Positions 3,377 through 34,538 of a stretch of DNA of 64,000 bases are shown here, one piece after another (the first letter of the stretch is position 1; every line of letters begins with the position of its first letter). A program made the position numbers and the translations under genes. Location: positions 248,001 to 312,000 of IMG/VR virus record IMGVR_UViG_3300023257_000007. The stretch is one strand, 5' to 3'. The notes beneath the pieces are model-generated. The model searched no databases. It saw only the letters and a list, made by a program, of their open reading frames with translations, and was not told where the DNA came from.

Positions 3377-3856
3377 TTAATATAATCCCATTTTATTTGC
3401 ATTATAAAGGTCTGGATTTTCTTTCCAAAACCATTCCCAATATTCTTCTAAATTATTATAAGGTAATTGGTTATTATAACAATTTAAATATTCTAATCTT
3501 TTAGATAATTCAGGTAATTCAGTTAATTGGTTACCATCACAATCTAAATATTTTAACTCTTTTGGTAATTCAGGCAATTTAGTTAATTTATTATTATAAC
3601 AATATAATATTTCTAACCCTTTTGGTAGTTCAGGTAATTCAATTAATTTGTTGTTGTCACAATATAACATTTCTAATCCTTTTGGTAATTCAGGTAATTC
3701 AGTTAATTGATTATTATAACACATTAATTTTTCTAACCCTTTAGGTAATTCAGGTAATTCAGTTAAATTTAAATTAACTAAATTTAATATTTTACCATCA
3801 TCACTTAGATGATCTTTTATTAATTGGTTTTCTGAATATGTTTTTAAATATTTCAT
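3377..3856 (-). CDS. Short-LRR protein (5 repeats), N-tag and C-tag A
   Basis: 20-aa LTELPELPKGLxxLxCxxNx repeats; MKYLKTYSEN...NANKMGLY. Confidence 0.95.
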   Translation of the reverse strand: MKYLKTYSENQLIKDHLSDDGKILNLVNLNLTELPELPKGLEKLMCYNNQLTELPELPKGLEMLYCDNNKLIELPELPKGLEILYCYNNKLTKLPELPKELKYLDCDGNQLTELPELSKRLEYLNCYNNQLPYNNLEEYWEWFWKENPDLYNANKMGLY

Positions 3857-3882
3857 CTATTTTATAATTTTATTGACTTACA
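3851..3882. repeat. 32-bp gene-junction direct repeat (copy 1; copy 2 at 4256-4287)
   Basis: tttcatctattttataattttattgacttaca identical at both ends of gene 3878-4261. Confidence 0.85.
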
Positions 3883-4261
3883 TAAGTCCTAATTTACCTG
3901 ATTCAAATACATATGGGTTATTATGAAAGAATATTTTCATAATAAATAATATTAGTTCATAATCTTTTATTATTTGGTGTCCATCATTTTTATTTGAAGA
4001 TTCTTTTATCCAATTTGGATCTGATACAACTGCAACTTGCTGTTCAACTTTTTGTAATATTATTTGAAATAGATTTCCTTCTCGTTTTAACACAATAGTT
4101 GTGTATACTCCGTTATAATCTATTTCAAGGAATCCATTTCTAATATAAATTTTAAATTTGGTATCTTTAAACATATCTTTTATTGTATCAACAAAGAAAT
4201 CTTGATTGTTATCATTAACTGAAATCTCATTTATCATTTGATATGTCTTTAAATGTTTCAT
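3878..4261 (-). CDS. N-tagged, C-tag A hypothetical protein
   Basis: MKHLKTYQMINEISVN...ESGKLGLM. Confidence 0.85.
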   Translation of the reverse strand: MKHLKTYQMINEISVNDNNQDFFVDTIKDMFKDTKFKIYIRNGFLEIDYNGVYTTIVLKREGNLFQIILQKVEQQVAVVSDPNWIKESSNKNDGHQIIKDYELILFIMKIFFHNNPYVFESGKLGLM

Positions 4262-4287
4262 CTATTTTATAATTTTATTGACTTACA
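4256..4287. repeat. 32-bp gene-junction direct repeat (copy 2)
   Basis: Identical to 3851-3882. Confidence 0.85.
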
Positions 4288-4651
4288 AGACACCAAGATT
4301 TTTTGTCCCATTATACATATTTATCATATTTTGTAATTCATTCATAAATTCATCTTTAGTTATTAATATATCTGAGTGTTTATAATAACCGCAAGGACCA
4401 TAAATACGATTTAATTTATAATGAATTGTTCTACTTTCATGTTGTACACAGCAACTATACACCATTTTTCTTTTATCTTCCTCTTTTTCAAGTATATCAC
4501 AACATAATTCTATTTTTGTTCTATGTACATCAAATTTAAAATCATTTATAAGTTTATCATATATTTCAATTGCTTCTTTTGCGTTATTAAATTCAACTGA
4601 TATAAACTTATCTTCATCTATATTTTCATTATATGTTTTAAGGTATTTCAT
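4283..4651 (-). CDS. N-tagged, C-tag A hypothetical protein
   Basis: MKYLKTYNEN...NGTKNLGVL. Confidence 0.85.
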   Translation of the reverse strand: MKYLKTYNENIDEDKFISVEFNNAKEAIEIYDKLINDFKFDVHRTKIELCCDILEKEEDKRKMVYSCCVQHESRTIHYKLNRIYGPCGYYKHSDILITKDEFMNELQNMINMYNGTKNLGVL

Positions 4652-5121
4652 TATAATAATCCTAGTTTATTTGCTTCTAAATCTGCTTTAAGGTCTTCAC
4701 TTTTAAGGTATTCTAATATTTGTGAAAGTTTTTTATAATTTTTTAAATTTTTACTAACCCTTGTTAAAAGACTAAATTTATCTCTATTATTATCTTCAAT
4801 AAGATAAGCAATAACATCAACAATTTTACTAGTATTAATATCAACTGAATCTAATACTTCTAGATGTGTATAATTACCTAATTTAATATTTTCTGGTATT
4901 TTTATAAATACTTGTTCATATTTATCACCATGTAAAATATATTGATATTTATTATATATTTTAGCACATTCCTTTTTAATATCTGATATTAGTTTATTAA
5001 AATTATCAAAAATTGTTTTATCATTTATTTGTTTATAAAGCAATTCTTTTTGTTTATAAAATGATTCTTGTTGTTTATAGTTTTCTTCTATGTTTTCGTT
5101 ATATGTTTCACTTATGATCAT
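4651..5121 (-). CDS. Hypothetical protein, degenerate N-tag, C-tag A
   Basis: MIISETYNEN...EANKLGLL; TAATG overlap with next gene. Confidence 0.85.
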   Translation of the reverse strand: MIISETYNENIEENYKQQESFYKQKELLYKQINDKTIFDNFNKLISDIKKECAKIYNKYQYILHGDKYEQVFIKIPENIKLGNYTHLEVLDSVDINTSKIVDVIAYLIEDNNRDKFSLLTRVSKNLKNYKKLSQILEYLKSEDLKADLEANKLGLL

Positions 5122-5131
5122 ATTGTTTTGT

Positions 5132-5163
5132 TTGTTTTATATATTAATTTGTTTTTTTAGAAT
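5132..5163. repeat. 32-bp intergenic repeat with TTAATATATA motif (copy 2)
   Basis: Identical to 2771-2802. Confidence 0.85.
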
Positions 5164-5241
5164 TTTTTTCTTATATTACAATAATTATTAAAAATTATGA
5201 AAGAATTAATTTGGTTAAATATATGTTATAAAGGTCTTATG

Positions 5242-5484
5242 TCAAAAGAAATGTATTTCTACATATTCATCTATGATGATTGGATGATATCTTTTAATAT
5301 CTCTCACTATATCATCTACAATTTCTTTTAGTTTTATTATATCTGTATTTGGTGGAACAAATAAGTAAATTTCTGAATCATCTTTACACAAACCCTTTTT
5401 ATTCAAATAATATGGTGTATTTTTAAATATATCATCAATAATATATTTAAATTTAAATGATTCATACTTTTTTATATATTTCAT
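5242..5484 (-). CDS. N-tagged hypothetical protein
   Basis: MKYIKKYESF...; no C-tag. Confidence 0.7.
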   Translation of the reverse strand: MKYIKKYESFKFKYIIDDIFKNTPYYLNKKGLCKDDSEIYLFVPPNTDIIKLKEIVDDIVRDIKRYHPIIIDEYVEIHFF

Positions 5485-5494
5485 AATTATTAGA

Positions 5495-5905
5495 TTATAA
5501 AAGACCCATTTGACCTGTTATTAATAATCTTTTTACTTTTTTTAATGGTACTAAATAATTTTCCCAGTTTTCTGGACTATCATCTATACCATCTGTTATA
5601 TCTTTATCTTCCCAAACAGATATTGGTATTTTATTATCCTTTGTAAAGATAGTGTTTGCACCATTTTGATCAAATCGTATAATCTCTTCATCAAATAAAT
5701 TAAAAATTGTTCGACTTGTTTTTATATTATCATCAATATATGAATTATAGTCAGTAATTAAATGTTTTGCATATTGATTAAACCATTTACAACCATTCTT
5801 TATAGCTAAATTAGTATAAGTAAAATATTCATCAATATTACTTACTTCAAACACAAATAATACATTTGGTATTGTACTTTCATTATATGTTTTTAAATAT
5901 TTCAT
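5495..5905 (-). CDS. N-tagged, C-tag A hypothetical protein
   Basis: MKYLKTYNES...ITGQMGLL. Confidence 0.85.
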   Translation of the reverse strand: MKYLKTYNESTIPNVLFVFEVSNIDEYFTYTNLAIKNGCKWFNQYAKHLITDYNSYIDDNIKTSRTIFNLFDEEIIRFDQNGANTIFTKDNKIPISVWEDKDITDGIDDSPENWENYLVPLKKVKRLLITGQMGLL

Positions 5906-6085
5906 TATAGTTTATATATTTATTTTTTTATTTAAGAAAATTTTAACTATTTTTTTAATACCTTTAGTTTTAACTATTGGTATATTTTTAAAATAATTAT
6001 TTAATTCATCAACCATTTTAATTCTTAACTTAGATGTAATGGTCATAGACTTAGCAAATTGATTATATGTGTCTAATTTATTCAT

Positions 6086-6511
6086 TTATAATAGTCCTAA
6101 TTTAGTAGATTCAAATTTTGATTCTATATTTTCACTATGAATATATTCTATTATTTTTTCTTCAAATTCCGTAGAGCAACTCTCAATATAATAATTAGTG
6201 TCATTCACAGATTGAAGAAATATTCTATAAGAAGTCGAAATTTCTTCATCATACTTTATGATATATAATGATAAATCATCATCTGGATCTACAATTGTTC
6301 TTCTATCTATATTAGTAGGTTTATCTATAAAATCTGAACCAGATACATTTACTTTAACATCTGTTCTACTATTCAAATATTCATTAGGTTTACCATATTT
6401 ATTTATTAAATACTCACATCTATATAATAATTCTTCATCATCTTTATAAATATGATGAACAGTACCATTATCATATATTAATGATTCATTATAAGTTTTT
6501 AAATATTTCAC
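6086..6511 (-). CDS. N-tagged, C-tag A hypothetical protein (GTG start)
   Basis: GTG-KYLKTYNES...ESTKLGLL. Confidence 0.85.
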   Translation of the reverse strand: MKYLKTYNESLIYDNGTVHHIYKDDEELLYRCEYLINKYGKPNEYLNSRTDVKVNVSGSDFIDKPTNIDRRTIVDPDDDLSLYIIKYDEEISTSYRIFLQSVNDTNYYIESCSTEFEEKIIEYIHSENIESKFESTKLGLL

Positions 6512-6516
6512 AAGAC

Positions 6517-6526
6517 TATATATTAA
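6517..6526 (-). promoter_or_regulatory. TTAATATATA promoter-like motif
   Basis: Exact motif just upstream of N-tagged gene 6086-6511. Confidence 0.55.
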
Positions 6527-6630
6527 TTTTTTATTTTAAGATAAATTTTCTATATTAAAATTATGGATATTAAAGAAAACCTTAAAAATTATTATGAAAT
6601 TAGATAAATATTTCTTAATTAAAGATAAAT

Positions 6631-6954
6631 ATGATTAAAATTAATATTACGGGAATTAATTGTAATGAATTTGAAAAGTTACAAAAAATATTCTTTGATC
6701 AAAATATACCTTGGTATTATAGTGGTTATAAATTACAATCATCCGATGATTGTAATTATTATCATAACATTTATATTGTTTCAAAAATCGTTGTCATGAG
6801 AAATGATAACCATGAAAAAGAAGAATATTATATGACCTTTAAAAAAGATAATATAATCTCAAAAGACCAAGATTTAATTGAATATAAATATGATGAAATG
6901 GATGAGAATACATTAAAAAGTTATTTTAACGGTTTACAACTAGGATTATTATGA
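6631..6954 (+). CDS. Small hypothetical protein, C-tag A
   Basis: Ends NGLQLGLL. Confidence 0.85.
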   Translation: MIKINITGINCNEFEKLQKIFFDQNIPWYYSGYKLQSSDDCNYYHNIYIVSKIVVMRNDNHEKEEYYMTFKKDNIISKDQDLIEYKYDEMDENTLKSYFNGLQLGLL

Positions 6955-7269
6955 TATCAATAAATATAGAAAATATAAGTCTAAATGACTTCAAGAAATT
7001 GCAAATACATATGATTGATCAAAATATTCCTTGGATTGATGGTGATTGGGAAGTTTGGGTAGATGGATATTGGTCATTTATAATTAATCATAAAAAAAAA
7101 TATCTTACTAATTGATCAATATACATCAACTGGTAAACCAGTTGATGGTTACCTTAGATATAATATGCAATTGTGTAATGTTTCATCTCCAATCGTTTTA
7201 AGTGTTGAAGAAATGCTTGATTTAAATATATACGAATATTTGGAGGCGAAAAAGTTTAATTTATTATAA
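6951..7269 (+). pseudogene. Frameshifted paralog of 6631-6954, C-tag A
   Basis: MISINIENISLNDFKKLQIHMIDQNIPW... shifts at a poly-A run near 7092-7100; the other frame ends EYLEAKKFNLL. Confidence 0.7.
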
Positions 7270-7514
7270 TAGATCCATCTTATTCGATGCAATATACTCT
7301 TGTAAATTAAAATCTTTAGTTATATCAGAACCATTTAACTTACCTAACAAAATACCAATTTCAGTATATTTTTCAATAATTTGATTATAAAACCAAGTAG
7401 TCCAATGATTTCCAATATAAGTTTTATCATCTATATTAATTAGTAAATTAATTTCTTTCCAAAACCATTCCTTATATCACTAATACTTTCATCATATGTC
7501 TTTAAGTATTTCAT
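7264..7514 (-). pseudogene. Frameshifted N-tagged, C-tag A gene
   Basis: MKYLKTYDESISDI, then a frame change to KEWFWKEINLL...QEYIASNKMDLL. Confidence 0.7.
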
Positions 7515-7537
7515 GAATAATTTAAAAACTTTTGTTT

Positions 7538-7547
7538 TATATATTAA
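7538..7547 (-). promoter_or_regulatory. TTAATATATA promoter-like motif
   Basis: Exact motif 24 nt upstream of the N-tagged start at 7514. Confidence 0.55.
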
Positions 7548-7731
7548 AATTTAGATTTGAATATCAATACCCAGAATTTATATTCCAACCTCTACAATAT
7601 CATAAAATTAATTTTTATACCAAGAAATATTCCTTATATTTAAGTATTGGAATTTCGAAAAAATTGAAGAATTTTTATTTTTTGAACAAATTCCGTATAT
7701 TATAAATGATGAAATACATAAACTACTAAAT

Positions 7732-8622
7732 ATGGAAGAAAAAACAAAAATATTATTAAACGGCAAAGAAAATAAGAGCGAACTTATTAACTTACTTACA
7801 AAAGTTGATGTTTCTTGCTCTACTCGTGAACTAAATTCTGAGTTGATAGTTAAAATCAAACATTTTAACAAATGTATCGAAGAAAATATCGAATTCAGAA
7901 ATAAATTCAATGTTAATGAAAGATTTGAGTTCTTAGAAGATCTTACCAACATGATTATTGATGGTAAAGGTAACTCATTGATAGTTATAGGTGAAGGTGG
8001 ACTTGGTAAAACATTTACTGTATTAAGCACTTTATCAAAAAGAACAAAAACTGGATTTCTAAACCTTTTCAAGAAAAAAGAAGATGTTCACATAGTTAAA
8101 GGTTTCTCAACAGCTAGAGGTCTATATGATACATTATATGATAATAGAGATAAATTAATTTTATTTGACGACTGTGATTCAATCTTAGAAGATAAAACAG
8201 CTATTAATATTTTAAAATCAGCTTTAGATTCTTATGATACTAGAATCGTTACATGGTCTAAATTTTTGAAAAATAAAAACAATTATCCACAATCATTCGA
8301 ATTTACAGGTAGAATAATCTTTATCTCAAATAAAAAGAAAACTCAAATACCACAACCAATCTTAACAAGAGGTTATGTAGTTGATTTAGAAATGAGCAAT
8401 GGTGAGAAAATCGACAGAATGGCTCACATCATGCCAACACTTATCGAAGATAAAGGTAAAGGTAGATGGAGTTTAAATGATGGTTTTACGGCTTTAGAAT
8501 TCATTAGAATAAATATAGATGATGTTAAAGAACTAAGTATTAGAACATTAGTAGATGTTTTAAGAATAATGAAATCAAGAAAAAATTGGGAAAAATTAGC
8601 TTTATATACAATAACAGAATAA
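7732..8622 (+). CDS. AAA-family P-loop ATPase
   Basis: Walker A GEGGLGKT, Walker B LILFDDCD, sensor-like IIFISN. Confidence 0.85.
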   Translation: MEEKTKILLNGKENKSELINLLTKVDVSCSTRELNSELIVKIKHFNKCIEENIEFRNKFNVNERFEFLEDLTNMIIDGKGNSLIVIGEGGLGKTFTVLSTLSKRTKTGFLNLFKKKEDVHIVKGFSTARGLYDTLYDNRDKLILFDDCDSILEDKTAINILKSALDSYDTRIVTWSKFLKNKNNYPQSFEFTGRIIFISNKKKTQIPQPILTRGYVVDLEMSNGEKIDRMAHIMPTLIEDKGKGRWSLNDGFTALEFIRINIDDVKELSIRTLVDVLRIMKSRKNWEKLALYTITE

Positions 8623-8912
8623 TGACAACATATATAACAGATATACCATCAGAATATATATTATATCTTGATAAAATAATCAGTGAATATTATAATATGA
8701 AATCTATAATTAGACCTAATAAAAGAATCATAAAATATGATTATTATTTTATAAGTATCAATAAATATAATGATAATTGTCTGTGTTATTCAGGTATGTG
8801 TTATTTACATGAACTCATAGGACCAACCAGTGAAACTATTAATTATGTTGATTGGTTAGAAAAACATAATTTAACATACAAATTAGAATCAACCAAATTA
8901 GGATTATTATGA
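8622..8912 (+). CDS. Small hypothetical protein, C-tag A; tandem paralog of 8909-9205
   Basis: MTTYITDIPSEYILYLDKIISEYYNM...ESTKLGLL. Confidence 0.85.
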   Translation: MTTYITDIPSEYILYLDKIISEYYNMKSIIRPNKRIIKYDYYFISINKYNDNCLCYSGMCYLHELIGPTSETINYVDWLEKHNLTYKLESTKLGLL

Positions 8913-9205
8913 CATTATATATAACAGACATACCTCAAAAAGAAATATTATATCTTGATAAAATAATCAGTGAATATTATAATATGGAAACTATAACTCG
9001 TAGTATTAATAGAATTAATTTCACATTATATGATTATATTTATATAAGTGTTGGTAAAAATTGTACTGAGGGATTATATTATTCAGATATGAATTATTTA
9101 AAACATATTAAAAAACAGAACCATAAAACTATCAATTATATTGATTGGTTGAAAAAGAATAATTTATTCTATAAATTAGAATCAGCCAAATTAGGATTAT
9201 TATGA
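8909..9205 (+). CDS. Small hypothetical protein, C-tag A
   Basis: MTLYITDIPQKEILYLDKIISEYYNM...ESAKLGLL. Confidence 0.85.
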   Translation: MTLYITDIPQKEILYLDKIISEYYNMETITRSINRINFTLYDYIYISVGKNCTEGLYYSDMNYLKHIKKQNHKTINYIDWLKKNNLFYKLESAKLGLL

Positions 9206-9212
9206 TAATAAA

Positions 9213-9222
9213 TTAATATATA
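9213..9222 (+). promoter_or_regulatory. TTAATATATA promoter-like motif
   Basis: Exact motif 7 nt upstream of ATG 9230. Confidence 0.5.
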
Positions 9223-9229
9223 AATTAGA

Positions 9230-9517
9230 ATGATATTAACAGATGAAATATTAAATGAAATAAAAGGATTTAAAAACCAATTTGCAATTTATATGCGTAA
9301 TGGTGATATATTTTATATACCAAAAGGTAGACCAGTTCAATATGCCGCTGGAAGAATGATAGCAAATTCTGAAAAACATAATACTATTGAAATAATTAAA
9401 TTTATTAATATTCTTTATTTTGTTATTGATGGTAAAAGATATGATTTTGAACTACCAACTGTAAAATTAACTAGATATCAAAAAATAATTAATTTTTTTA
9501 AAAGACCAACTTTCTAA
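9230..9517 (+). CDS. Hypothetical protein
   Basis: ORF track, 95 aa. Confidence 0.7.
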   Translation: MILTDEILNEIKGFKNQFAIYMRNGDIFYIPKGRPVQYAAGRMIANSEKHNTIEIIKFINILYFVIDGKRYDFELPTVKLTRYQKIINFFKRPTF

Positions 9518-9520
9518 ATT

Positions 9521-10348
9521 ATGATAACACGAATTGCACCATCACCAACAGGATATTTTCATTTAGGAACTCTAAGAACTGCACTACTAAATTATTTAAT
9601 GGCAAGAGCAAACAATGGAACATTCATCCTTAGAATTGATGATACCGACCAAGAAAGAAATCAAAACACATTCACAAACTATATCTATAAACAAATGAAT
9701 AAATTTGGCCTTGATTATGATATAACTTTTAAACAATCAGAAAGATTAGACAGATATAAAGAAGTAGCATATAAAATAGGAACAAAAACTGAAAATGGTT
9801 ATGAATTAAATATGGGAGAATATTCAATGGTTATACTCAGAAATAACGGTTTTCCTACCTATAATTTCTGTTCAATTCTTGATGATTATGATTATGATGT
9901 TACAGATATAGTCAGAGGTGTTGACCATATCGCAAACGAATCTAAACAAAAAATTATATGGGATTTGATTTGTTATGTAGAAAGTGATAAACCTTTTCCT
10001 AATATAATTCATGCTGGTTTACTTTTTGAAGGAAATAAAAAGCTTTCTAAAAGAAGTGGTAATGGTCTAACAGAAGATTATTTAGATTTTAGTACTAATG
10101 CAATATTAAATTGGTTATTAAAATTTGGTTGGTCACATCCAGACCCAAACTTCGATAAGAAGTATCCTACATTAAATATGAATCAAATGATTAATTTATT
10201 CAATGATGGTAAAATCTCCGATAGAAATTGTAAAATAGATAAGGCTAAATTAAACTTTTTAAATAAAAAATGGAGATACTTAGAAAGAAAAGCTAATGAA
10301 AACTCTAAACTTTCTAAGTTTAATGAATTTAATAATGGTCTATTGTAA
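9521..10348 (+). CDS. Minimal glutamyl-tRNA synthetase-like (class I aaRS catalytic domain) protein
   Basis: RIAPSPTGYFHLG (HIGH), LRIDDTD, RGVDH, KLSKR (KMSKS); lacks most of the acceptor-binding insertion and the anticodon domain. Confidence 0.85.
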   Translation: MITRIAPSPTGYFHLGTLRTALLNYLMARANNGTFILRIDDTDQERNQNTFTNYIYKQMNKFGLDYDITFKQSERLDRYKEVAYKIGTKTENGYELNMGEYSMVILRNNGFPTYNFCSILDDYDYDVTDIVRGVDHIANESKQKIIWDLICYVESDKPFPNIIHAGLLFEGNKKLSKRSGNGLTEDYLDFSTNAILNWLLKFGWSHPDPNFDKKYPTLNMNQMINLFNDGKISDRNCKIDKAKLNFLNKKWRYLERKANENSKLSKFNEFNNGLL

Positions 10349-11020
10349 AGATTCACCAAGTTTTAAAGCAACTTCTACTGAAGCTCTTACATCATTTTCA
10401 CAATATTCAACAATGGTTTGAATATCATTCTTTTGATGAAAATATTCATAAACATCAGCACCACTTATCTTTTGCTTAGGTGATTCAACTCCTAAAACAT
10501 AACACACTTCTTCTAATGAAGAATATTCACGAGAACCTGCTTTCCAAATATCACTTAATTCAATTAAATTCATTTCCCAAGGTTTCTTACCTTCTACTCT
10601 TAATAAAAAAGGCAGTTTTATTCCATATTTAAAATATTTCTTATTTAATAAAGGTATGTCAAATCCTGTAATATTATAACCACCTAGACTAAAGTTGTTA
10701 TTATTAGCATTAATAATGACTTTATTGAATTTATTCAAAATGTCTGTTTCATCACCGTGAAATGATTTTATAATCCATTCATCATTAATAAAATGCGACA
10801 TAGATATACAAACAATTTTATTATATTCATGTAAAAGAGGACCCTTCATAGGATATAGTTCTTCTAGTGGTTTATCCCAACTTTTATCATATACTGATTT
10901 CTTTTTTTGTTTATTATTGAAAACTTTAAAACCAATTGGATCTAAAGATTCAAATTCATGTATATCTTTGTATTCAGTACTCGTTTCAATATCAAAAAAT
11001 AAGCAAGTATAATTGTTCAT
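10340..11020 (-). CDS. DnaQ-like 3'-5' exonuclease (PolB-exo-related family)
   Basis: ExoI FFDIET, ExoII GYNITGFDIP, ExoIII YCENDV. Confidence 0.85.
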   Translation of the reverse strand: MNNYTCLFFDIETSTEYKDIHEFESLDPIGFKVFNNKQKKKSVYDKSWDKPLEELYPMKGPLLHEYNKIVCISMSHFINDEWIIKSFHGDETDILNKFNKVIINANNNNFSLGGYNITGFDIPLLNKKYFKYGIKLPFLLRVEGKKPWEMNLIELSDIWKAGSREYSSLEEVCYVLGVESPKQKISGADVYEYFHQKNDIQTIVEYCENDVRASVEVALKLGESLQ

Positions 11021-11057
11021 ATAATTTTTTTCTTTTTATATATTTGTTAGTGTAAAA

Positions 11058-11080
11058 CACACAAGTCTTTAGCTTGTGTG
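11058..11080 (+). other. IS left-end hairpin
   Basis: cacacaag-tctttag-cttgtgtg, perfect 8-bp stem. Confidence 0.8.
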
Positions 11081-11160
11081 ATGTAAGCGATTAAAATGGT
11101 AAAAAAACCATTATATTTTAATTATATATACTTACAGAAGAAAAAAGTTTTTTGTAAAAA

Positions 11161-12327: not shown

Positions 12328-12408
12328 TTCATAGTCTAGAATGGTCAAAAATATTTTAATATTTTGAAAAATTTCCTTATATTAATATTAATTAACTTAA
12401 AACTAAAA

Positions 12409-12729: not shown

Positions 12730-12730
12730 T

Positions 12731-13650: not shown

Positions 13651-13656
13651 ATAACT

Positions 13657-24042: not shown

Positions 24043-24049
24043 TTTTCAA

Positions 24050-25054: not shown

Positions 25055-25061
25055 ATAGGTA

Positions 25062-25656: not shown

Positions 25657-25665
25657 TAGAAGATT

Positions 25666-26507: not shown

Positions 26508-26508
26508 T

Positions 26509-26985: not shown

Positions 26986-27329
26986 TGAAATACCTTAAAA
27001 CATATAATGAAAATTCAGTAGATACAAATCGAGTGATATTTGGTATATTTATTGATAATAAAGGAGACTTTGCAAAAGTACAAAAAACTTTGATTAATTT
27101 AGGTTATGAAATAAGTTCATGGTATAAAAGTAAACATTGGTTTCCTGATTTAAAATTTGAAGATGATATACTTGACTATAATTCACTACCAATAAAACCA
27201 GTTTATATTACAATATGGAGAGATGATAAAAGATGGACTATGATAAATGAAATAAATGAAAAAATCATAATCGTTGATGTTGAAGATGTTCATAAATATA
27301 TCGAAGCTCTAAAACTAAACATTTTATAA
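26985..27329 (+). CDS. N-tagged, C-tag A hypothetical protein
   Basis: MKYLKTYNEN...EALKLNIL. Confidence 0.85.
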   Translation: MKYLKTYNENSVDTNRVIFGIFIDNKGDFAKVQKTLINLGYEISSWYKSKHWFPDLKFEDDILDYNSLPIKPVYITIWRDDKRWTMINEINEKIIIVDVEDVHKYIEALKLNIL

Positions 27330-27338
27330 TTTCTATAT

Positions 27339-27348
27339 TTAATATATA
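27339..27348 (+). promoter_or_regulatory. TTAATATATA promoter-like motif
   Basis: Exact motif upstream of the 27369 operon. Confidence 0.5.
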
Positions 27349-27368
27349 ATGGAAATAATCATACAAGA

Positions 27369-27863
27369 ATGAAAAAATTAATATACATACTATTCTTAAT
27401 ACTACTACCAATTTTCTCTTTAGCACAAAAAGAGAACTATTACCAACATAATACAGAAAAACAAATAAGATTTTATAAACATAAAGATTGGACATTAGAA
27501 AATGAAGGAGAATGGGGTTCTTTTTATTGGAAGATTATTAGATCATCTAAAGATTCAGATGATTATTACTGGTATTATGTATATTTATATTCAAACTCAT
27601 ATTTTAACACAAAAACAAATAATGAATATGACAAAGCTATTACATATATTAAAAATATGGTTATAACTATGTATATTTATAAAAACAAAAAAGATAAATT
27701 AATCTACATTAATAATATACCGATTAAATTACCTTATGTTGTATGTGATTATAAACTAGATGAAAGTCTATATGTTGCTTATTTTTATTCAACATCAAAA
27801 TACAATTCGTTTAATCTTAAGTTTGAAGGAGCAACCGCTTTTGATTATTCTGAAACAAAATAA
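27369..27863 (+). CDS. Secreted protein with a Sec signal peptide
   Basis: MKKLIYILFLILLPIFSLA|Q: basic n-region, hydrophobic h-region, SLA cleavage site. Confidence 0.75.
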   Translation: MKKLIYILFLILLPIFSLAQKENYYQHNTEKQIRFYKHKDWTLENEGEWGSFYWKIIRSSKDSDDYYWYYVYLYSNSYFNTKTNNEYDKAITYIKNMVITMYIYKNKKDKLIYINNIPIKLPYVVCDYKLDESLYVAYFYSTSKYNSFNLKFEGATAFDYSETK

Positions 27864-27871
27864 AAAATATC

Positions 27872-28252
27872 ATGAAACATTTATATGAATGGAATGTATT
27901 TAAAAATAAAAATAAATATGAAGAAGGTGATAAACTTATGAATAGACTTATTGATATTATTAAAAATGAAGATATATCTATCAAACATAGTGGTGGATAT
28001 AATATAGAATTGGATAATAAAATATATAGTTTTGCAAGAAGTGGTCGTAGTTGTTGGGTGACTAAGTATGATAATAATCAAAATAATGGAAAATTTTGGC
28101 AAGGTGAACCGGAATCTAAATATGATTTTTCTGTTAAAATATGGAAAGAATTAGACAATTTACACAAAGAACAAAATAAACCAGATTTATCAAATGATTT
28201 GGATAATTTAACTGATGAAAATAGAACAGCAAAAAAGATGGGATTATTATGA
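27872..28252 (+). CDS. Hypothetical protein, N-tag-like start, C-tag A
   Basis: MKHLYEWN...TAKKMGLL. Confidence 0.85.
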   Translation: MKHLYEWNVFKNKNKYEEGDKLMNRLIDIIKNEDISIKHSGGYNIELDNKIYSFARSGRSCWVTKYDNNQNNGKFWQGEPESKYDFSVKIWKELDNLHKEQNKPDLSNDLDNLTDENRTAKKMGLL

Positions 28253-28686
28253 GAAAAATTAGAAAAATAAACGAAGCGTACTGGCAAAGTGACATGAGCC
28301 CAGAAAAAAGAAGAAAATTAGCTGAAGAACTAATTAAATATTTAAGAGAAGAAGTTAAAGAAAAAGACGACAAAGAAAAGCTAGGATTATTATTTATGCA
28401 TTTCTGTGGTGATAGAGGATTGTCATTTACTGAAGCAAGAGATCTTGATAAAGAAGTGGGTGACATGAGTGCAGAAATGTTAATGTTAGGAGATTTATCA
28501 GAATATATTGAAAAAATAATTAAAGAATTATTTATAAAATATGGTAATGGTAAAGATGATATTTATGATAAAACAAATTTCTTAAAATATTTAAATAAAA
28601 AAATTGATTGGTTGTCTAATATTTATGATTCACCATCTGAAATAGAAAATCTTGAAAAAGTAAGAAATCGTTTTGAAAATTATTAA
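28249..28686 (+). CDS. Hypothetical protein, N-tag-like start
   Basis: MRKIRKINEA...; internal EKLGLLF. Confidence 0.8.
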   Translation: MRKIRKINEAYWQSDMSPEKRRKLAEELIKYLREEVKEKDDKEKLGLLFMHFCGDRGLSFTEARDLDKEVGDMSAEMLMLGDLSEYIEKIIKELFIKYGNGKDDIYDKTNFLKYLNKKIDWLSNIYDSPSEIENLEKVRNRFENY

Positions 28687-28986
28687 ATGAAACATTTAAA
28701 GACATATAATGAAAATCAATTTATTAAAGACCATTTAAGTGGTGATGGTAAATCATTAGATTTAGATAAGTTAAATCTAACTGAATTACCTAAATTACCT
28801 GAAGGATTAGAAAGATTAGATTGTGATAATAACCTATTAACAGAATTACCTGAATTACCAAAAGGCTTAGAAAGATTATATTGTTATGATAACAAATTAC
28901 CTTATAATGATTTAAAAGGATATTGGAAATGGTTCTGGGAACAAAATCCAGACCTTTATAATGCAAATAAAATGGGATTATATTAA
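28687..28986 (+). CDS. Short-LRR protein (2 repeats), N-tag and C-tag A
   Basis: Minimal member with both caps. Confidence 0.95.
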   Translation: MKHLKTYNENQFIKDHLSGDGKSLDLDKLNLTELPKLPEGLERLDCDNNLLTELPELPKGLERLYCYDNKLPYNDLKGYWKWFWEQNPDLYNANKMGLY

Positions 28987-29405
28987 TGAAATATTTAAAA
29001 ACATATTCAGAAAATAAATTAATTAAAGACAATTTAAGTAATAATGGTAAAACATTAGATTTAAGTGATTTAAATTTAAAAGAATTACCTGAATTACCTG
29101 AAGGATTAGAAAGATTAGATTGTGATAATAACAGATTAACTGAATTACCTGAATTACCTGAAGGATTAAGATATTTAGATTGTGATAATAATCAATTAAC
29201 TGAATTACCTGAATTACCAAAAGGATTAGAATCAATATGGTGCTATAATAATAAATTAACTGAATTACCTGAATTACCTAAAGGGTTAAAAATATTAGAT
29301 TGTGATTATAACAAATTACCTTATAATGATTTAGAAGAATATTGGGAATGGTTTTGGAAGGAAAATCCAGATTTAAATCAAGCAAACAAATTAGGATTAT
29401 ATTAA
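28986..29405 (+). CDS. Short-LRR protein (4 repeats), N-tag and C-tag A
   Basis: MKYLKTYSEN...QANKLGLY. Confidence 0.95.
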   Translation: MKYLKTYSENKLIKDNLSNNGKTLDLSDLNLKELPELPEGLERLDCDNNRLTELPELPEGLRYLDCDNNQLTELPELPKGLESIWCYNNKLTELPELPKGLKILDCDYNKLPYNDLEEYWEWFWKENPDLNQANKLGLY

Positions 29406-29420
29406 AAATAATAAAAAATC

Positions 29421-29837
29421 ATGGCAAAGAAATCATTACAAGATAAAGCAAACTTTATAGATAATGTAATAACAGATAAAGGAACATTTACATTAAGTAC
29501 AAAAACAGTTAAATGGATAATTGGTTTACTAATAGTAGGAACATTAACTATTCTTGGTATGTCTTGGAAATATAAAATATCATTAGATACTAAAATAGAA
29601 AATATGGGGATTAAAATTAATAAAGAACTTATAGTAGTGAAGAATAATTTAACTAAAATAATAGAAGTGCTTGAAAAAGAAGATGTAAAACCAAATACCA
29701 AAAAAAATTATGAACAAGATGGAACAATTGGTATATTATTAGATAGAACTAACTCTAAAGACAGAAATGTAAATAACAATAGAGAAAGGCCTGATGATAT
29801 TAATAATCGACCACCTCCACCAATATTGAACAATTAA
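29421..29837 (+). CDS. Single-pass membrane protein with a coiled-coil-like tail
   Basis: WIIGLLIVGTLTILGMSW hydrophobic segment. Confidence 0.7.
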   Translation: MAKKSLQDKANFIDNVITDKGTFTLSTKTVKWIIGLLIVGTLTILGMSWKYKISLDTKIENMGIKINKELIVVKNNLTKIIEVLEKEDVKPNTKKNYEQDGTIGILLDRTNSKDRNVNNNRERPDDINNRPPPPILNN

Positions 29838-29839
29838 CT

Positions 29840-30127
29840 ATGAAAATTAAAAGATTTAACGAAAATTATAAACATAAATCAGTAGTGTACGGTACTAAAA
29901 ATAAAGAAATACCTGAATTTTTAGGCAAGTTTGCTGACTATATAATAGAAAATATTGATATATTACATGAATGGTATATTGATAGTGAAAATTATGTTAA
30001 TGAAAATTATATTGTTTTTGAATTAGTAGAACAATACGATGTTGATTTATGTATTAAAAATTTCACAAAATTACAAGAATATACTCTTATGATCCTGATA
30101 AATTTAAAAAAGATATGTATTTATTAG
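29840..30127 (+). CDS. N-tag-like hypothetical protein
   Basis: MKIKRFNENY... Confidence 0.65.
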   Translation: MKIKRFNENYKHKSVVYGTKNKEIPEFLGKFADYIIENIDILHEWYIDSENYVNENYIVFELVEQYDVDLCIKNFTKLQEYTLMILINLKKICIY

Positions 30128-30149
30128 AGGGTGGTAAATTAGGGTTACT

Positions 30150-30605
30150 TTAACCTATTATTTTAAGTAATTTTTGAAACAATTCTTCTTTATCAACAAT
30201 CTTACTTTGGTGTTTATCACCAATCAATCTTAAATCTTCAAGAGAATCTATATTTATTATATGAGTATTTTCAAACTCAATCGTATCATAATTACCTTCA
30301 CTGGTGGTAAGTATAATAAGGTGATCATCATCAAAAAACCCTTTTACCATTTCTTTTAAATCAGAAATTTTTTGTATAGTATTACTTGATTTACCTGTTG
30401 TTGACGCAATAAAAATATAATAATTTTTAAGGTTTTTATTATGAGTTACTGTATAATCAACTGGTTGTAAATAAGACGATTTTTTTATTGTAATTTCATC
30501 AAATCCAAAACTTCCAAATAAAAGTTCTAAAAATACCATATTTATTTCATATCTGGTTATTAATTCTTTATTTTTCTGTATCTTCTTTATCTTTGACTTC
30601 TTCAT
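30150..30605 (-). CDS. Hypothetical protein
   Basis: ORF track, 151 aa. Confidence 0.7.
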   Translation of the reverse strand: MKKSKIKKIQKNKELITRYEINMVFLELLFGSFGFDEITIKKSSYLQPVDYTVTHNKNLKNYYIFIASTTGKSSNTIQKISDLKEMVKGFFDDDHLIILTTSEGNYDTIEFENTHIINIDSLEDLRLIGDKHQSKIVDKEELFQKLLKIIG

Positions 30606-30606
30606 T

Positions 30607-30930
30607 TTAAATTAAGTTTAATTTTATGCTTTCAGTTAATTCATTTTCAGTTAATCCGAGAAATGAATCTATATCTATTTTTACTATATTCATATTAAAT
30701 GTAACATAAGTAGTATATCCTTCAGTTGTATAAAAAGATTTATCTGATATAAAAGCTCTTTTTCTATTATTTATAATTTCAGTAACAACAAACATTTTAG
30801 AATAATTTTTAATATCATTTATTCTTATTCCAGTTGTGTCATAGTTATCTTTCTCTAATTTATTAAGAACTTTTAACGTTTCTCTTTCATTAATTACTTT
30901 TATTGCTGTTAAATTAAACATAGTTTTCAT
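30607..30930 (-). CDS. Small hypothetical protein, C-tag A
   Basis: Ends ESIKLNLI. Confidence 0.8.
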   Translation of the reverse strand: MKTMFNLTAIKVINERETLKVLNKLEKDNYDTTGIRINDIKNYSKMFVVTEIINNRKRAFISDKSFYTTEGYTTYVTFNMNIVKIDIDSFLGLTENELTESIKLNLI

Positions 30931-30987
30931 AGATTTTCTTTATTATTTAATACAATATACGAAATTCGTCCAAAAATAAAAAATAAC

Positions 30988-31212
30988 TTATAACAAACCA
31001 AACTTCTTAGATTCAACAAGAGACTTCAACATATTAAAATCATCATCAAGAATCAAAGAAAATTCATTATCAGGAAAACCAAATTGATCTAATGAATTTA
31101 TTGTTTTTTGATAAGTTTCTTTGTGTAATTTATAATAAATTATCATGATATTTCCTGTATATTTAAAAAGTTTTTTATCTTTTCTATTTCCTCTGTCGTT
31201 AAAGAATTCCAA
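30988..31212 (-). CDS. Small hypothetical protein, C-tag A (start uncertain; may be a frameshifted continuation of 31143-31535)
   Basis: Ends ESKKFGLL. Confidence 0.6.
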   Translation of the reverse strand: MEFFNDRGNRKDKKLFKYTGNIMIIYYKLHKETYQKTINSLDQFGFPDNEFSLILDDDFNMLKSLVESKKFGLL

Positions 31213-31535
31213 ATAACATTATCTCCATTAACATTAAATATTAAACAAAAATTATCAACAGGCACAAACTCAAGTTCTGATCTATGAACAGACCATTCAA
31301 GATTATTCTCAAATTTTACTCTTAATTTATTTCCTTCTTCTGATATAATTTCACCTTTTGTACCAACTGGTAAATCAAATTCATCACCACCATAATAACA
31401 ATATTTGACTGGACTATACGATCTTTTTTTAATGACAAATGATTTACCATTAGTAATACTCAATCTATGAATACTTGACACTTTAATTATTTCTCTATCA
31501 CCTAATTTGATAAATTCAATATTATTAATTCCCAT
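31143..31535 (-). CDS. Hypothetical protein with an SH3/KOW-like beta segment
   Basis: LPVGTKGEIISEEGNKLRVKFENNLEWSVHRSEL. Confidence 0.55.
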   Translation of the reverse strand: MGINNIEFIKLGDREIIKVSSIHRLSITNGKSFVIKKRSYSPVKYCYYGGDEFDLPVGTKGEIISEEGNKLRVKFENNLEWSVHRSELEFVPVDNFCLIFNVNGDNVIWNSLTTEEIEKIKNFLNIQEIS

Positions 31536-31682
31536 TTATTGTAATTATTTTTAATTTTTTCTAAATATTTTACAAAATTCCTCAACACTAACCCTATTTT
31601 ATATACTAACCATCCACCTTCTGATAATATTACTCCAATTATAATTCCTAATAATATCCACATAATTTATTCTCTTATTTAT

Positions 31683-31973
31683 TTATAATAATTGTAATTT
31701 TTTTGCCTCTATCAACATTGATAATTCATCAAAATCGAACTCCCATGCCATAGTTTTAATTATTTCCCATTTATGAACCTGTTTCTGATAATGTATAAAA
31801 GCATCTTCAGAAGTATATGATGGTAAACTTTTTAATAAAGTATCATCTATAATATAAAATAATGTATTAGTACTATTATTTACATCTAGCTTAACTCCCT
31901 TATTTTTAAAATAATTCAATATTTGAGTTTTGTCATTAAACTTATATGTACGTATAATTATAATTTTTTTCAT
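31683..31973 (-). CDS. Small hypothetical protein, C-tag A
   Basis: Ends EAKKLQLL. Confidence 0.8.
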   Translation of the reverse strand: MKKIIIIRTYKFNDKTQILNYFKNKGVKLDVNNSTNTLFYIIDDTLLKSLPSYTSEDAFIHYQKQVHKWEIIKTMAWEFDFDELSMLIEAKKLQLL

Positions 31974-32266
31974 AATAAGTTCATTTTTGTAGCGTCAATA
32001 ACCATATCTATTTCATAAATATTATGTAATTCAATATCAAAATTACATTTTCCAACTATCCAATTTAATTTGTTTGTTCCAATTTCATGTTTTAAATATA
32101 CATCTATAGTATTATTAAATATTAATGACTTAAACACTTCCATACTTAATGCAGATATTCTTTCACAGGTAGGTAAGTCTGGAAAGAAGAATACACCTTT
32201 ATTAAAGAATTTTTCACAATATTCATGAAATATTTTTTCTGTTTCACATTTTATAACACACATCAT
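31970..32266 (-). CDS. Small hypothetical protein, C-tag A
   Basis: Ends DATKMNLL. Confidence 0.8.
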   Translation of the reverse strand: MMCVIKCETEKIFHEYCEKFFNKGVFFFPDLPTCERISALSMEVFKSLIFNNTIDVYLKHEIGTNKLNWIVGKCNFDIELHNIYEIDMVIDATKMNLL

Positions 32267-32586
32267 AATAATCCTAATTTTTGTGCTATTACAGCAGATT
32301 GTAAATCTAAATTTTCATCATATACAAAATAGTTATAATTTCTAAGTGTTTTGTAATATTCTCTATTAACATAGAAAGTTTCATTATAAAACATCTTTTT
32401 AATTTCTTTCTCTTTATGTTCATCTTTATATAATACTAAACAAGTTTTAACAAATTTAAAATCCATTTCTATTATAGCAGCACTTCCGGTATTCCAAATA
32501 TATCCTAATGATATAAGATACTTCTGGGCTTGTATGTGGTTTAATTCAGATACCTCAATTAATATGTAATCTCTATTATTTACCAT
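32263..32586 (-). CDS. Small hypothetical protein, C-tag A
   Basis: Ends IAQKLGLL. Confidence 0.8.
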   Translation of the reverse strand: MVNNRDYILIEVSELNHIQAQKYLISLGYIWNTGSAAIIEMDFKFVKTCLVLYKDEHKEKEIKKMFYNETFYVNREYYKTLRNYNYFVYDENLDLQSAVIAQKLGLL

Positions 32587-32921
32587 AATTTCATTTTTAA
32601 TGCATTAATACATACTTCTACATTTTCTATATCTTTAAATTCAAAAATATCAACAACTTCGAGATGTCTCTCTTCATTAAAAATATTATCAACTTCTGTA
32701 TAATATTTCTTCATCCATTTAGATTCATCATTACCCCAAAATATATGTTTTGTGCTGTCTTCTATACAATATTCTAAAAATAAATTACATCTACCTTCAA
32801 TATATACTATTTCATAACTATCTTCACTCCAGTAAAAATCAAGTTTAAATGCATATTTTTGAGCATCTATGAACTCTTCTTCAGATTTCGTTTTAATTGA
32901 TATTATTTGATGTTTTTTCAT
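32580..32921 (-). CDS. Small hypothetical protein, degenerate C-tag A
   Basis: Ends NALKMKLW. Confidence 0.8.
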   Translation of the reverse strand: MKKHQIISIKTKSEEEFIDAQKYAFKLDFYWSEDSYEIVYIEGRCNLFLEYCIEDSTKHIFWGNDESKWMKKYYTEVDNIFNEERHLEVVDIFEFKDIENVEVCINALKMKLW

Positions 32922-32989
32922 TATAAAATTTAGTTAATTATTCTAATATAATAAATTTATTCAAGAAATAAAAAAAATATATAGGAATA

Positions 32990-33364
32990 ATGAAATACAT
33001 AAAATCATATAACGAAAATAACTTAGAAAAAATCATTTCATTTATTGAAAACAATATTTTCATCAATTCAAAATATCACATTGTAAAAAGTGATAATTAC
33101 ATTGAATTAAGAGACTCAGATATGAATGATTATCATGGATCTAATATGATATTATCTACAATAATTAATGAAAAAGATCCATCAATTTTATATATTATAA
33201 ATATACTTAAAGACGAAATTAAAAAAGCAATCTCTGAATTAAAAATTAGGTATACTCTACGTTTCTGGTTCATTGAAGACTATTCAAAAATTGAAAAATT
33301 AATTGATGATTTTGTTACAAAAAATCAAGATTTATTACAAGCAAACCAATTAGGACTATTATAA
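32990..33364 (+). CDS. N-tagged, C-tag A hypothetical protein
   Basis: MKYIKSYNEN...QANQLGLL; AAATATATA at 32975-32983. Confidence 0.85.
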   Translation: MKYIKSYNENNLEKIISFIENNIFINSKYHIVKSDNYIELRDSDMNDYHGSNMILSTIINEKDPSILYIINILKDEIKKAISELKIRYTLRFWFIEDYSKIEKLIDDFVTKNQDLLQANQLGLL

Positions 33365-33822
33365 TGAAATATTTAGAAACATATATGCACAAGTTTTATA
33401 TTGATAATTTTAAATTAGAGGATGATAAAGAATTATATCTTGAATTTAATAAATTAATAGAAAAGATTAAAAAAGAATGGCCCTCAGAAAAATTATGGTT
33501 AGCACATGAACTAGGTTTACACCCTACATCTAAAACTATTGATAAATTATTATATGAAAGATGCGTGGAACTAATTAATAAATATGGTAATTTAAATTAT
33601 TTTAATGGAGTTGCTGAAATGGTTAAAATACCTACTTATATTGACATGTATATATTTAAAAATAGATATGATAATATAGGCATTGGTCATGCTTATGAAC
33701 CTGGGACCGATTGGTATTTTTATGATAAAATGAAAAATACTGAAAAAACAAAAATCAGAAATTTTATAATGAGCGATGAATTAGAACCAATGTTAGAAGC
33801 TGAAAAAATGGGAATATTATGA
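33364..33822 (+). CDS. N-tagged, C-tag A hypothetical protein
   Basis: MKYLETY...EAEKMGIL. Confidence 0.85.
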   Translation: MKYLETYMHKFYIDNFKLEDDKELYLEFNKLIEKIKKEWPSEKLWLAHELGLHPTSKTIDKLLYERCVELINKYGNLNYFNGVAEMVKIPTYIDMYIFKNRYDNIGIGHAYEPGTDWYFYDKMKNTEKTKIRNFIMSDELEPMLEAEKMGIL

Positions 33823-34538
33823 AATATTTAAAGACATATAATGAAAATCAATTAATTAAAGACCATTTAAAAGATAATGGTAAAACATTAGATTTAATTG
33901 ATTTAAATTTAACTGAATTACCTGAATTACCTGAAGGATTAAAAGAATTATATTGTGATGATAACCAATTAACTAAATTACCTGAATTACCTAAAGGATT
34001 AAAATTTTTAAATTGTGAAAATAACCAATTAACCGAATTACCTGAATTACCTAAAGGGTTAGAAAGATTATATTGTTATAATAATCAATTAACTGAATTA
34101 CCTGAATTACCTAAAAGATTAAAATATTTAAATTGTTATAATAACCTATTAACTGAATTACCTGAATTACCTAAGGGATTAAAAAGATTAGATTGTGAAA
34201 ATAATCAATTAACTGAATTGCCTGAATTACCTAAAGGTTTAGAAAAATTATATTGTTATAATAATAAATTAACTAAATTACCTGAATTACCTAAAGATTT
34301 AAAAACATTAGATTGTGAACATAACCAATTAACTAAATTACCTGAATTACCTAAAGGATTAGAAAGATTAGATTGTTATAATAATAAATTAACTAAATTA
34401 CCTGAATTACCTAAAGGATTAAAAAGATTATATTGTCATGATAACCAATTACCTTATAACAATTTAAAAGGATATTGGGAATGGTTTTGGAAAGAAAACC
34501 CAGACCTTTATAATGCAAAAAAGATGGGATTATATTAA
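33819..34538 (+). CDS. Short-LRR protein (9 repeats), N-tag and C-tag A
   Basis: Longest family member. Confidence 0.95.
   Translation: MKYLKTYNENQLIKDHLKDNGKTLDLIDLNLTELPELPEGLKELYCDDNQLTKLPELPKGLKFLNCENNQLTELPELPKGLERLYCYNNQLTELPELPKRLKYLNCYNNLLTELPELPKGLKRLDCENNQLTELPELPKGLEKLYCYNNKLTKLPELPKDLKTLDCEHNQLTKLPELPKGLERLDCYNNKLTKLPELPKGLKRLYCHDNQLPYNNLKGYWEWFWKENPDLYNAKKMGLY

Follow-up and report, generated by a model that had tools for sequence, protein, structure and literature searches.

What kind of gene family is represented by a series of small, capped leucine-rich repeat (LRR) proteins in an A+T-rich viral genome, and is that family diversified by a dedicated mechanism? The DNA that raises this question is a window of 64,000 nucleotides, corresponding to approximately positions 248,001–312,000 of the Joint Genome Institute (JGI) contig Ga0222658_1000003 (348,222 bp; metagenome 3300023257), which is IMG/VR record IMGVR_UViG_3300023257_000007. 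An original prediction, made from the letters of the window, had proposed a repertoire of LRR proteins with constant caps and exchanged 60 bp modules, diversified in a manner resembling the assembly of variable lymphocyte receptors (VLRs) in lampreys. On balance we favour a different answer, namely that this is a dispersed germline multigene family of LRR-only mini-proteins which carries a hypervariable face, turns over by birth-and-death and probably encodes binders of host proteins. We found no description of an LRR binder family of this kind in bacteriophage in the literature on LRR proteins of phages and huge phages.

A dispersed family of capped LRR proteins

Seven complete open reading frames (ORFs), occupying five separate loci, translate as had been claimed into paralogs with two to nine repeats (Table 1; genes are referred to below by their first coordinate). 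Each protein consists of a leader of approximately ten residues (MKYLKTY(N/S)EN), a helical N-cap, 2–9 LRRs, a Trp-rich C-cap and a tail of approximately eight residues (xxA(N/K)K(M/L)GLY). When modules are parsed backwards from the LPY of the C-cap, and the unit is numbered from L1 of LTELPELPKGL, the seven genes yield 35 modules of exactly 60 bp or 20 amino acids (aa), with the consensus LTELPELPKGLxxLxCxxNx.

The caps had been described as constant. They are conserved, but pairwise nucleotide distances of 11–24% for the N-cap and 4–19% for the C-cap show that they are not invariant; likewise, family-specific LRR caps are present, but the outermost residues that had been assigned to them are a generic leader and tail shared with unrelated genes (see below). 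The C-cap proper, LPYxNLxxYWxWFWxxNPDL, is Trp-rich, family-specific and folded as two helices in the predicted structure. It is also rare: when the last 32 residues were searched as a profile, no more than 17 of 1.84 billion representative clusters matched, and in the remoter matches to this profile the leader and C-cap flank a different, longer LRR type.

The count of seven paralogs in the window proved too low. Searches by tblastn with the seven proteins, together with direct translation, uncovered a truncated copy, a C-terminal fragment, a jumble of family pieces and a divergent gene (Table 1). The jumble contains an N-cap, four inverted modules, more modules, pieces of N-cap, and a C-cap in inverted orientation with a leader after it; it includes one head-to-head module junction with 6 nt between the arms, and its inverted arms are 71–95% complementary. 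At least two further intact members (200 aa and 219 aa) lie on the same contig beyond the window, so that the contig carries at least nine intact germline copies of the mini LRR protein. Several members each are also present on related contigs, which measure 344 kb, 166 kb, 38 kb and 36 kb.

Table 1. Coordinates of LRR family members, tail-bearing genes and other features of the window
Feature	Position	Strand	Length and remarks
LRR paralog, intact	3377..3856	-	159 aa, 5 repeats; 150-bp and 117-bp tracts identical to 20919-21479
LRR paralog, intact	15784..16230	+	148 aa, 4 repeats; long leader variant MKYLKTYNRMINEISVNEN
LRR paralog, intact	20440..20919	+	159 aa, 5 repeats; 3 nt differences between r4 and r5
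LRR paralog, intact	20919..21479	+	186 aa, 6 repeats; mosaic
LRR paralog, intact	28687..28986	+	99 aa, 2 repeats
LRR paralog, intact	28986..29405	+	139 aa, 4 repeats; member modelled with AlphaFold2
LRR paralog, intact	33819..34538	+	239 aa, 9 repeats; Pfam and phmmer LRR matches
Truncated family member	49957..50364	-	135 aa; lacks MKYLKTY leader and C-cap; runs into unrelated sequence
C-terminal pseudogene fragment	42898..43092	-	two repeats, C-cap and tail; start codon absent, stops upstream
Jumble of family pieces	16837..17690		~850 bp, both strands; found by tblastn and translation
Divergent LRR protein	54226..54882	-	218 aa; same repeat type; other N- and C-terminal regions; lacks leader and tail
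Accessory region	360..36938		44 ORFs (seven LRR genes included) ending [KQ][ML]GL[LIYM]-stop
Tail-bearing ORFs outside first 37 kb	41734-42000; 53080-53412; 63364-63522		
Tail-gene paralog expansions	12409-13650 + 19624-19926; 25180-26985; 8622-9205 + 17682-18161; 35229-36477; 24050-24979; 663-986 + 2079-2399 + 26509-26985		
Ankyrin-like protein	21995-22402	-	135 aa; Ank_2, E=3e-4 (weak); tail-bearing
CBASS inhibitor Acb3 homologue	39401-40216	-	271 aa; PF25187 E=2e-37; also phrog_7203
UvsW-like DEAD helicase	48314-49954	-	27% identical to helicases of T4-like cyanophages
Stand-alone 3'-5' exonuclease	10340-11020	-	DNA_pol_B_exo2, phrog_25228; phage-type match
Class I tRNA synthetase catalytic domain	9521-10348	+	275 aa; tRNA-synt_1c; fragment-sized; adjoins exonuclease 10340-11020
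TnpB	11161-12327	+	388 aa; IS605 OrfB / Cas12f-like TNB
TnpB	57212-58408	-	398 aa; IS605 OrfB / Cas12f-like TNB
PcfJ-like protein	18383-19624	-	
DFP domain protein	60890-61540	-	phosphopantothenoylcysteine synthetase/decarboxylase
Family X polymerase pieces	13657-14547	+	296 aa; Pol-beta thumb 85-144, HHH_8 (8-kDa) 153-224, HHH_5 241-296
NUDIX hydrolase in two overlapping ORFs	34546-34972	-	59 aa and 92 aa; directly downstream of LRR gene 33819, opposite strand

Repeat class and predicted fold

The assignment of the repeat to the 20-residue type of YopM, SspH and IpaH was borne out, these being the top matches in both phmmer and Foldseek searches. Against the sequences of PDB entries, phmmer returned YopM (E=7.7e-98) followed by SspH2, SspH1, SlrP and IpaH proteins, and the alignment begins ahead of the first repeat (query residue 13 onward against YopM residue 65 onward). 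With 35 exact 20-aa units, the proteins fall within the bacterial class of LPX-type LRRs of 20–22 residues. Pfam searches of the LRR proteins returned LRR families only (including LRR_4), with no NEL, F-box or other enzymatic domain; they stop approximately 30 aa past the last LRR, and the PDB alignments span the LRRs only, which separates them from the NEL E3 ligases.

For the 139-aa member, an AlphaFold2 model based on a family alignment of 17 sequences has a pLDDT (predicted local distance difference test score) of 93.5, the first ten residues being least confident (pLDDT 60). It comprises a helix at residues 2–16, five parallel strands, with one 3-residue strand per repeat at unit positions 13–15, and two C-terminal helices across residues 116–135. 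Foldseek searches with the model gave the LRR domains of IpaH, SspH and YopM as best matches in the PDB, and giant-virus LRR proteins as the nearest viral models in BFVD.

YopM shares with the phage proteins the LPX-type 20-residue repeat, an LRR-only architecture without a catalytic domain, and a pre-LRR segment, common also to IpaH, to which the phage N-cap is homologous. YopM alleles also differ in repeat number (13–21). However, the phage proteins are far smaller (2–9 repeats), have a novel Trp-rich two-helix C-cap, lack a type III secretion signal and the long N-terminal helical hairpin, and begin with the generic MKYLKTY leader; moreover they are here encoded by a phage, with many paralogs per genome. 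The IpaH, SspH and SlrP proteins are likewise a multi-paralog family, in which the LRR confers the substrate specificity of the ligase, and theirs is the closest solved LRR fold (TM score, normalised to the query, of 0.56–0.71; 36–52% identity), but the phage proteins lack the NEL domain and end 30 residues past the last repeat.

Variation is concentrated on the predicted binding face

Variation had been said to concentrate at the x positions of LxxLxCxxNx, and amino-acid entropy over the 35 modules does peak at six positions: 13 (2.9 bit), 17 (2.1), 15 (1.7), 18 (1.5), 20 (1.4) and 12 (1.2), compared to 0–0.9 bit at the 14 framework positions. The residues found there change between the repeats of one gene as well as between genes, and are mainly Tyr, Asp, Asn, Arg, Glu, Lys, Gly and His. 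Since the modelled strands fall at unit positions 13–15, the variable positions would lie on and just past the strand of the concave face, in agreement with the original prediction. The excess of nonsynonymous over synonymous change (dN/dS) that was to be looked for at these codons is also present, at 2.7 for the six variable codons compared to 0.18 for framework codons, although as a contrast that pools all pairs of paralogous repeats within and between genes, under an extreme A+T codon bias which depresses dS, rather than as a formal test for positive selection.

Recombination and birth-and-death evolution

The two blocks reported to be shared by genes 3377 and 20919 (150 bp and 117 bp) are base-for-base identical as reverse complements. 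The genes differ at 45 of 480 aligned bases, and identical runs of 156 bp and 117 bp were reached in none of 100,000 permutations (P<1e-5). That these paralogs have recombined at least once therefore stands, but the proposed exchange of modules does not: in the coordinates of gene 3377 the tracts run from 103 to 252 and from 324 to 440, missing the module boundaries at 90, 150, 210, 270, 330 and 390. Because they end inside modules, they are best regarded as ordinary homologous-recombination tracts, not cassette swaps. No other pair of paralogs shares an exact match longer than 50 bp.

Gene 20919 is a mosaic of several sources. Its leader variant is common to gene 15784 and the jumble, its two tracts are those of gene 3377, the end of its r3 equals r4 of gene 28986, and the end of its tail equals that of gene 20440. 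Over gene pairs, N-cap and C-cap distances are uncorrelated (rho -0.33, not significant), a decoupling which, on segments of 90 bp, fits mosaicism weakly.

The first module retains a PEGL signature in five of the seven genes and the last modules tend to resemble one another, so that positional identity is partly kept; together with the arbitrary tract ends, the PEGL signature speaks against the idea that modules are swapped as cassettes. We also considered homogenisation of modules within genes, and rejected it, as modules are equally alike within and between genes (mean difference 9.39 of 60 nt and 9.67, respectively). Repeats r4 and r5 of gene 20440, with just 3 nucleotide differences between them, point to duplication in situ.

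Intact, truncated, fragmentary and scrambled copies, repeat numbers that change by steps of 60 bp and range from 2 to 9, and supported mosaic tracts are all found in this family, as in families that turn over by birth-and-death. On this pattern, the family evolves by birth-and-death with unequal crossing-over, and with occasional ectopic conversion between dispersed copies. Recombination of this sort would plausibly suit a phage with T4-like recombination functions.

A leader and tail common to unrelated accessory genes

The outermost residues of the LRR proteins are not confined to the family. A tail of the form [MLI]G[LIV][hydrophobic]-stop ends 47 of the 164 window ORFs of at least 50 aa, compared to 0.14 expected, and the first 37 kb account for 44 of them. 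Once ten residues have been removed at both ends, the bodies of these ORFs form 31 clusters that are unrelated by BLASTP. The leader, MK[YH][LI]K.[YF].E, is present in the same or a close variant form on at least 19 intact ORFs of the accessory region (360–36938), including at least 12 non-LRR ORFs, and two LRR genes, the jumble and the non-LRR gene 3878–4261 share an insertion of nine residues in the leader, (R)MINEISVN. Relatives from unrelated samples have corresponding ends (MKYLKYFEN ... NAxDMGLM), and a drifted form is found in the remotest members of the family.

Substitutions in the tail are conservative in the protein. Of the Gly codons in the tails, 76% are GGA, compared to 30% genome-wide and 41% in interior Gly-Leu pairs, and this bias may include a nucleotide-level component or reflect recent shared ancestry of the tails. 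A role of the tail GGA as a general ribosome-binding site was considered and rejected, since Shine-Dalgarno use is weak (12%, compared to a background of 6%). Pfam searches of 20 non-LRR proteins bearing the leader or tail found nothing but one weak ankyrin match, in a protein which would represent a second binder scaffold with the signature (Table 1). Other small paralog expansions were seen among the tail-bearing genes (BLASTP clusters of 4, 3, 3, 3 and 2 genes), the LRR family being the largest of several; the genes at 25180–26985 form a tandem series, as judged by eye.

We infer that the leader and tail are not LRR caps but a signature common to many small accessory proteins, by which these would be handled or addressed independently of the LRR fold. 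The signature marks a whole class of accessory genes, and may be the more novel feature of this region.

A likeness is offered by the internal proteins IPI, IPII and IPIII of phage T4, which are unrelated small proteins encoded in plastic genome regions and carry an MK leader of approximately ten residues. The T4 ipI, ipII and ipIII genes begin MKTFKEF or MKTYQEF, and the capsid targeting sequence (CTS) has been confirmed as MKTYQEFIAE and MKTFKEFTST; this sequence, of approximately ten residues, is enough to encapsidate any protein and is then cleaved off (PMC7697877). In contrast, T4 has approximately five such proteins, whereas here the leader is found on at least 19 and the tail on 47, and the C-terminal tail motif is absent from the T4 internal proteins. 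The tail is also reminiscent of the QLGLF-type peptides by which C termini bind the clamp, and of the cargo peptides of encapsulins. One T4 internal protein, IPI*, is injected and inhibits a restriction system of the host.

It is possible, if doubtful, that the leader (as a CTS-like element), the tail (as an encapsulin-type element) or both address the LRR binders and dozens of other proteins to the capsid, from which they would be injected together with the DNA as effectors; such a role would refine the binder family that we favour, not replace it. The distribution of leader and tail over so many unrelated families and their retention in distant relatives suggest it, as do the T4 precedent, the T4-like replication genes of the lineage and the low confidence of the first ten residues in the structural model. 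However, more than 45 different proteins from a single 37-kb region would far exceed the T4 complement, just a few residues resemble the T4 CTS, and T4 protease sites carry Leu/Ile-x-Glu, so that the Tyr-x-Glu of the phage leader counts against it. More generally, leader and tail might be the addressing peptides of a hitherto undescribed sorting system of A+T-rich jumbo phages, directing approximately 50 small proteins of at least 31 unrelated families, among them the hypervariable LRR binders, to one destination, an idea that we put forward tentatively and consider rather unlikely. The most attractive destination may be the capsid interior, for a counter-defence arsenal that is co-injected, with a common hub protein as the alternative. 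Were this a sorting signal, effector genes of the lineage could be recognised from sequence alone.

Stability across assemblies

The exact proteins recur in several samples and in the products of two assembly pipelines. Those of genes 15784 and 33819 were found in eight contigs each, that of gene 3377 in four (one of them a 257-kb MEGAHIT contig) and that of gene 20919 in three. Gene 20440 is 100% identical throughout in the independent assembly L003, and the jumble is 100% identical in assemblies L002 and L003. Exact recurrence in independent assemblies argues against random mis-assembly, and a repertoire that is the same at every sampling of the phage speaks against rapid programmed diversification.

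LRR genes are nevertheless the sites at which short-read assemblies break or switch partner, which is relevant to the curation of jumbo-phage genomes. Two k141 contigs stop at 20795 and 21182, the latter (L003) exactly 141 nt into the 150-bp block shared by genes 3377 and 20919. The alternative assembly L011 matches the window exactly over 10,254 bp, departs from it at 50111, within the truncated LRR gene, and continues as L020 (99.7%), the two being joined via approximately 196 bp of shared LRR sequence. A further two assemblies, L012 and L022, are identical over 10.4 kb apart from five mismatches, all within the final 45 bp of an LRR gene (10372–10415), beyond which they diverge completely. 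These switches may represent real recombinants among co-occurring genomes, or k-mer chimeras.

The same contig ends and junctions allow the argument that, in a genuine family, the signs of exchange are an artefact of short-read assembly, produced by de Bruijn graph paths that switch between paralogs. We consider this unlikely. The full-length protein of gene 3377 was recovered from both JGI and MEGAHIT assemblies of different samples, gene 20919 is present in more than one contig, as noted above, and the junction between the truncated LRR gene and the adjacent helicase is repeated in a second JGI assembly (L027); furthermore, a branch at a 141-mer itself means that the repeat is in the reads.

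Proposed function of the LRR proteins

Under the reading that we favour, each paralog would be a small binder of distinct specificity that acts within the infected cell on host proteins, with host takeover or counter-defence as the most plausible role. Binders of this design, with LRRs and a hypervariable face, recur in arms races, examples being VLRs, plant NLRs (nucleotide-binding LRR receptors), IpaH effectors and the repeat families of giant viruses. The homologue of Acb3, which lies approximately 5 kb from the last LRR gene, is likely to be a counter-defence gene, Acb3 having been described as a CD-NTase inhibitor acting against CBASS, the cyclic-oligonucleotide-based anti-phage signalling system (bioRxiv 10.1101/2025.07.23.666291). 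Together with the T4-CTS-like leader, this gene provides a context compatible with injected inhibitors of host defence. If each paralog does neutralise a different host protein, the family would constitute a natural library of minimal (99–239 aa), well-folding binders, as well as a handle on the targets of host defence and takeover in an uncultivated phage-host system.

Several points weigh against this reading. We infer the binder function from fold and context alone. Unambiguous evidence of recombination comes from one paralog pair only, and since short-read assemblies end or diverge inside LRR genes, some of the junctions could be assembly choices. Given its pooling of repeats and the codon bias, the dN/dS contrast would indicate relaxed constraint or selection against sameness, not positive selection in the formal sense. 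No capsid, portal or terminase gene was recognised in the examined stretches of the contig and its relatives, which leaves its identity as a phage well supported rather than proven, and the giant-virus LRR proteins that are the nearest structural neighbours of the model in BFVD leave a eukaryotic host conceivable.

An extracellular role is very unlikely. The proteins would in that case decorate the capsid or fibres, or serve as adhesins for host-surface or environmental ligands, with the tail docking them to a common virion site. Constant ends with variable bodies do resemble exchangeable receptor-binding modules, and LRR adhesins are common (e.g. internalins). However, the genes lie in arrays of ORFans of 100–150 aa, beside a counter-defence homologue and not with structural genes; every 20-residue repeat contains a free Cys; the nearest relatives are cytosolic effectors; and the tail is common to 31 unrelated families.

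Probable identity of the phage and its host

The contig is most likely an uncultivated jumbo tailed phage of at least 348 kb, an assignment that its gene content supports well. The window has a G+C content of approximately 24% and is densely packed with short ORFs, at approximately one gene per 0.5 kb, with stop and start codons overlapping in many cases. Several homing endonucleases and an SbcC homologue are encoded elsewhere on the contig, a relative (L031) encodes T4-type topoisomerase II subunits, and an HU protein is among the PHROG and Pfam matches of the lineage. In the ESM Atlas, the nearest cluster comprises 301 members, of which 98% are viral, Uroviricota being the most frequent. The scarcity of Shine-Dalgarno motifs noted above is compatible with a Bacteroidota-like host, without proving one. 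A scan for tRNA genes found none, and sigma-70 promoters and terminators around genes were not above shuffled expectation. A megablast search with 25 kb of sequence turned up no close relative among deposited phages, and tblastn with one LRR protein returned weak LRR matches only. Two TnpB genes are present in the window (Table 1), and TnpA was not seen.

That the contig instead belongs to a eukaryotic virus, with the LRR family aimed at eukaryotic host proteins in the manner of the repeat-protein families of giant viruses, is highly improbable. In its favour, the top structural matches in BFVD are LRR proteins of Klosneuvirus-like and other giant viruses, Pacmanvirus proteins occur among the sequence matches, a related contig encodes DSPc and a type IB topoisomerase, and Shine-Dalgarno motifs are not enriched. 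The gene density and overlapping stops and starts oppose it, as do the phage helicase, exonuclease, homing endonucleases, Acb3, TnpB, PcfJ, HU and T4-type topoisomerase II identified with PHROG and Pfam, and the Uroviricota affinity of the nearest Atlas cluster. A giant-virus origin was also assessed by the Mimivirus early-promoter motif AAAATTGA and rejected, the motif showing no enrichment (18 observed, 28 expected). The LRR, ankyrin and FNIP families of giant viruses do resemble the present family as lineage-specific viral expansions of binder scaffolds, but they belong to eukaryotic viruses, encode larger proteins that are often fused to F-box or other domains, and lack the architecture of leader, C-cap and tail.

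Programmed diversification as an unlikely alternative

Least probable of all is programmed diversification of the VLR or cassette type, with donors such as the jumble copied frequently into expressed genes: promoterless family pieces are clustered there in both orientations, one pair of genes is mosaic and alternative assemblies part ways within LRR genes, but the seven genes are complete, separate and, as exact proteins, identical in 3–8 independent contigs, the jumble is unchanged in other assemblies and its pieces of N-cap, leader and C-cap resemble decayed genes, recombination tracts disregard module boundaries, the first module keeps its own signature, and a scan of window ORFs of at least 250 aa turned up no deaminase, reverse transcriptase or invertase.

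With no diversifying enzyme found among these ORFs, the analogy with VLRs is limited to protein architecture. Lamprey and hagfish VLRs are also small capped LRR binders with a variable number of modules and concave-face diversity, and they give weak Foldseek matches to the phage model (E 3e-3 to 1e-2). However, a VLR gene is incomplete in the germline and is filled in somatically from flanking donor cassettes, whereas the phage genes are complete and stable, and VLRs combine a 24-residue LRRV with disulphide-bonded caps, compared to the 20-residue LPX repeat and helical C-cap found here. Nor do the genes resemble targets of a diversity-generating retroelement, since variation falls at fixed positions of 35 modules, not in one pair of variable and template repeats. 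A shufflon is also poorly matched, as no recombinase was found among the window ORFs scanned, the inverted arms of the jumble are LRR modules, and the arrangement is identical in independent assemblies.

Other genes of the window

In the ORF at 13657–14547 the thumb precedes the 8-kDa domain, an unusual order, and this may be a rearranged, permuted or split family X polymerase (PolX) gene. The NUDIX hydrolase next to the last LRR gene, identical in three assemblies, is a frameshifted gene or a pseudogene. The rightmost 28 kb of the window form a single long block of minus-strand genes, in which GC skew is strongly negative.

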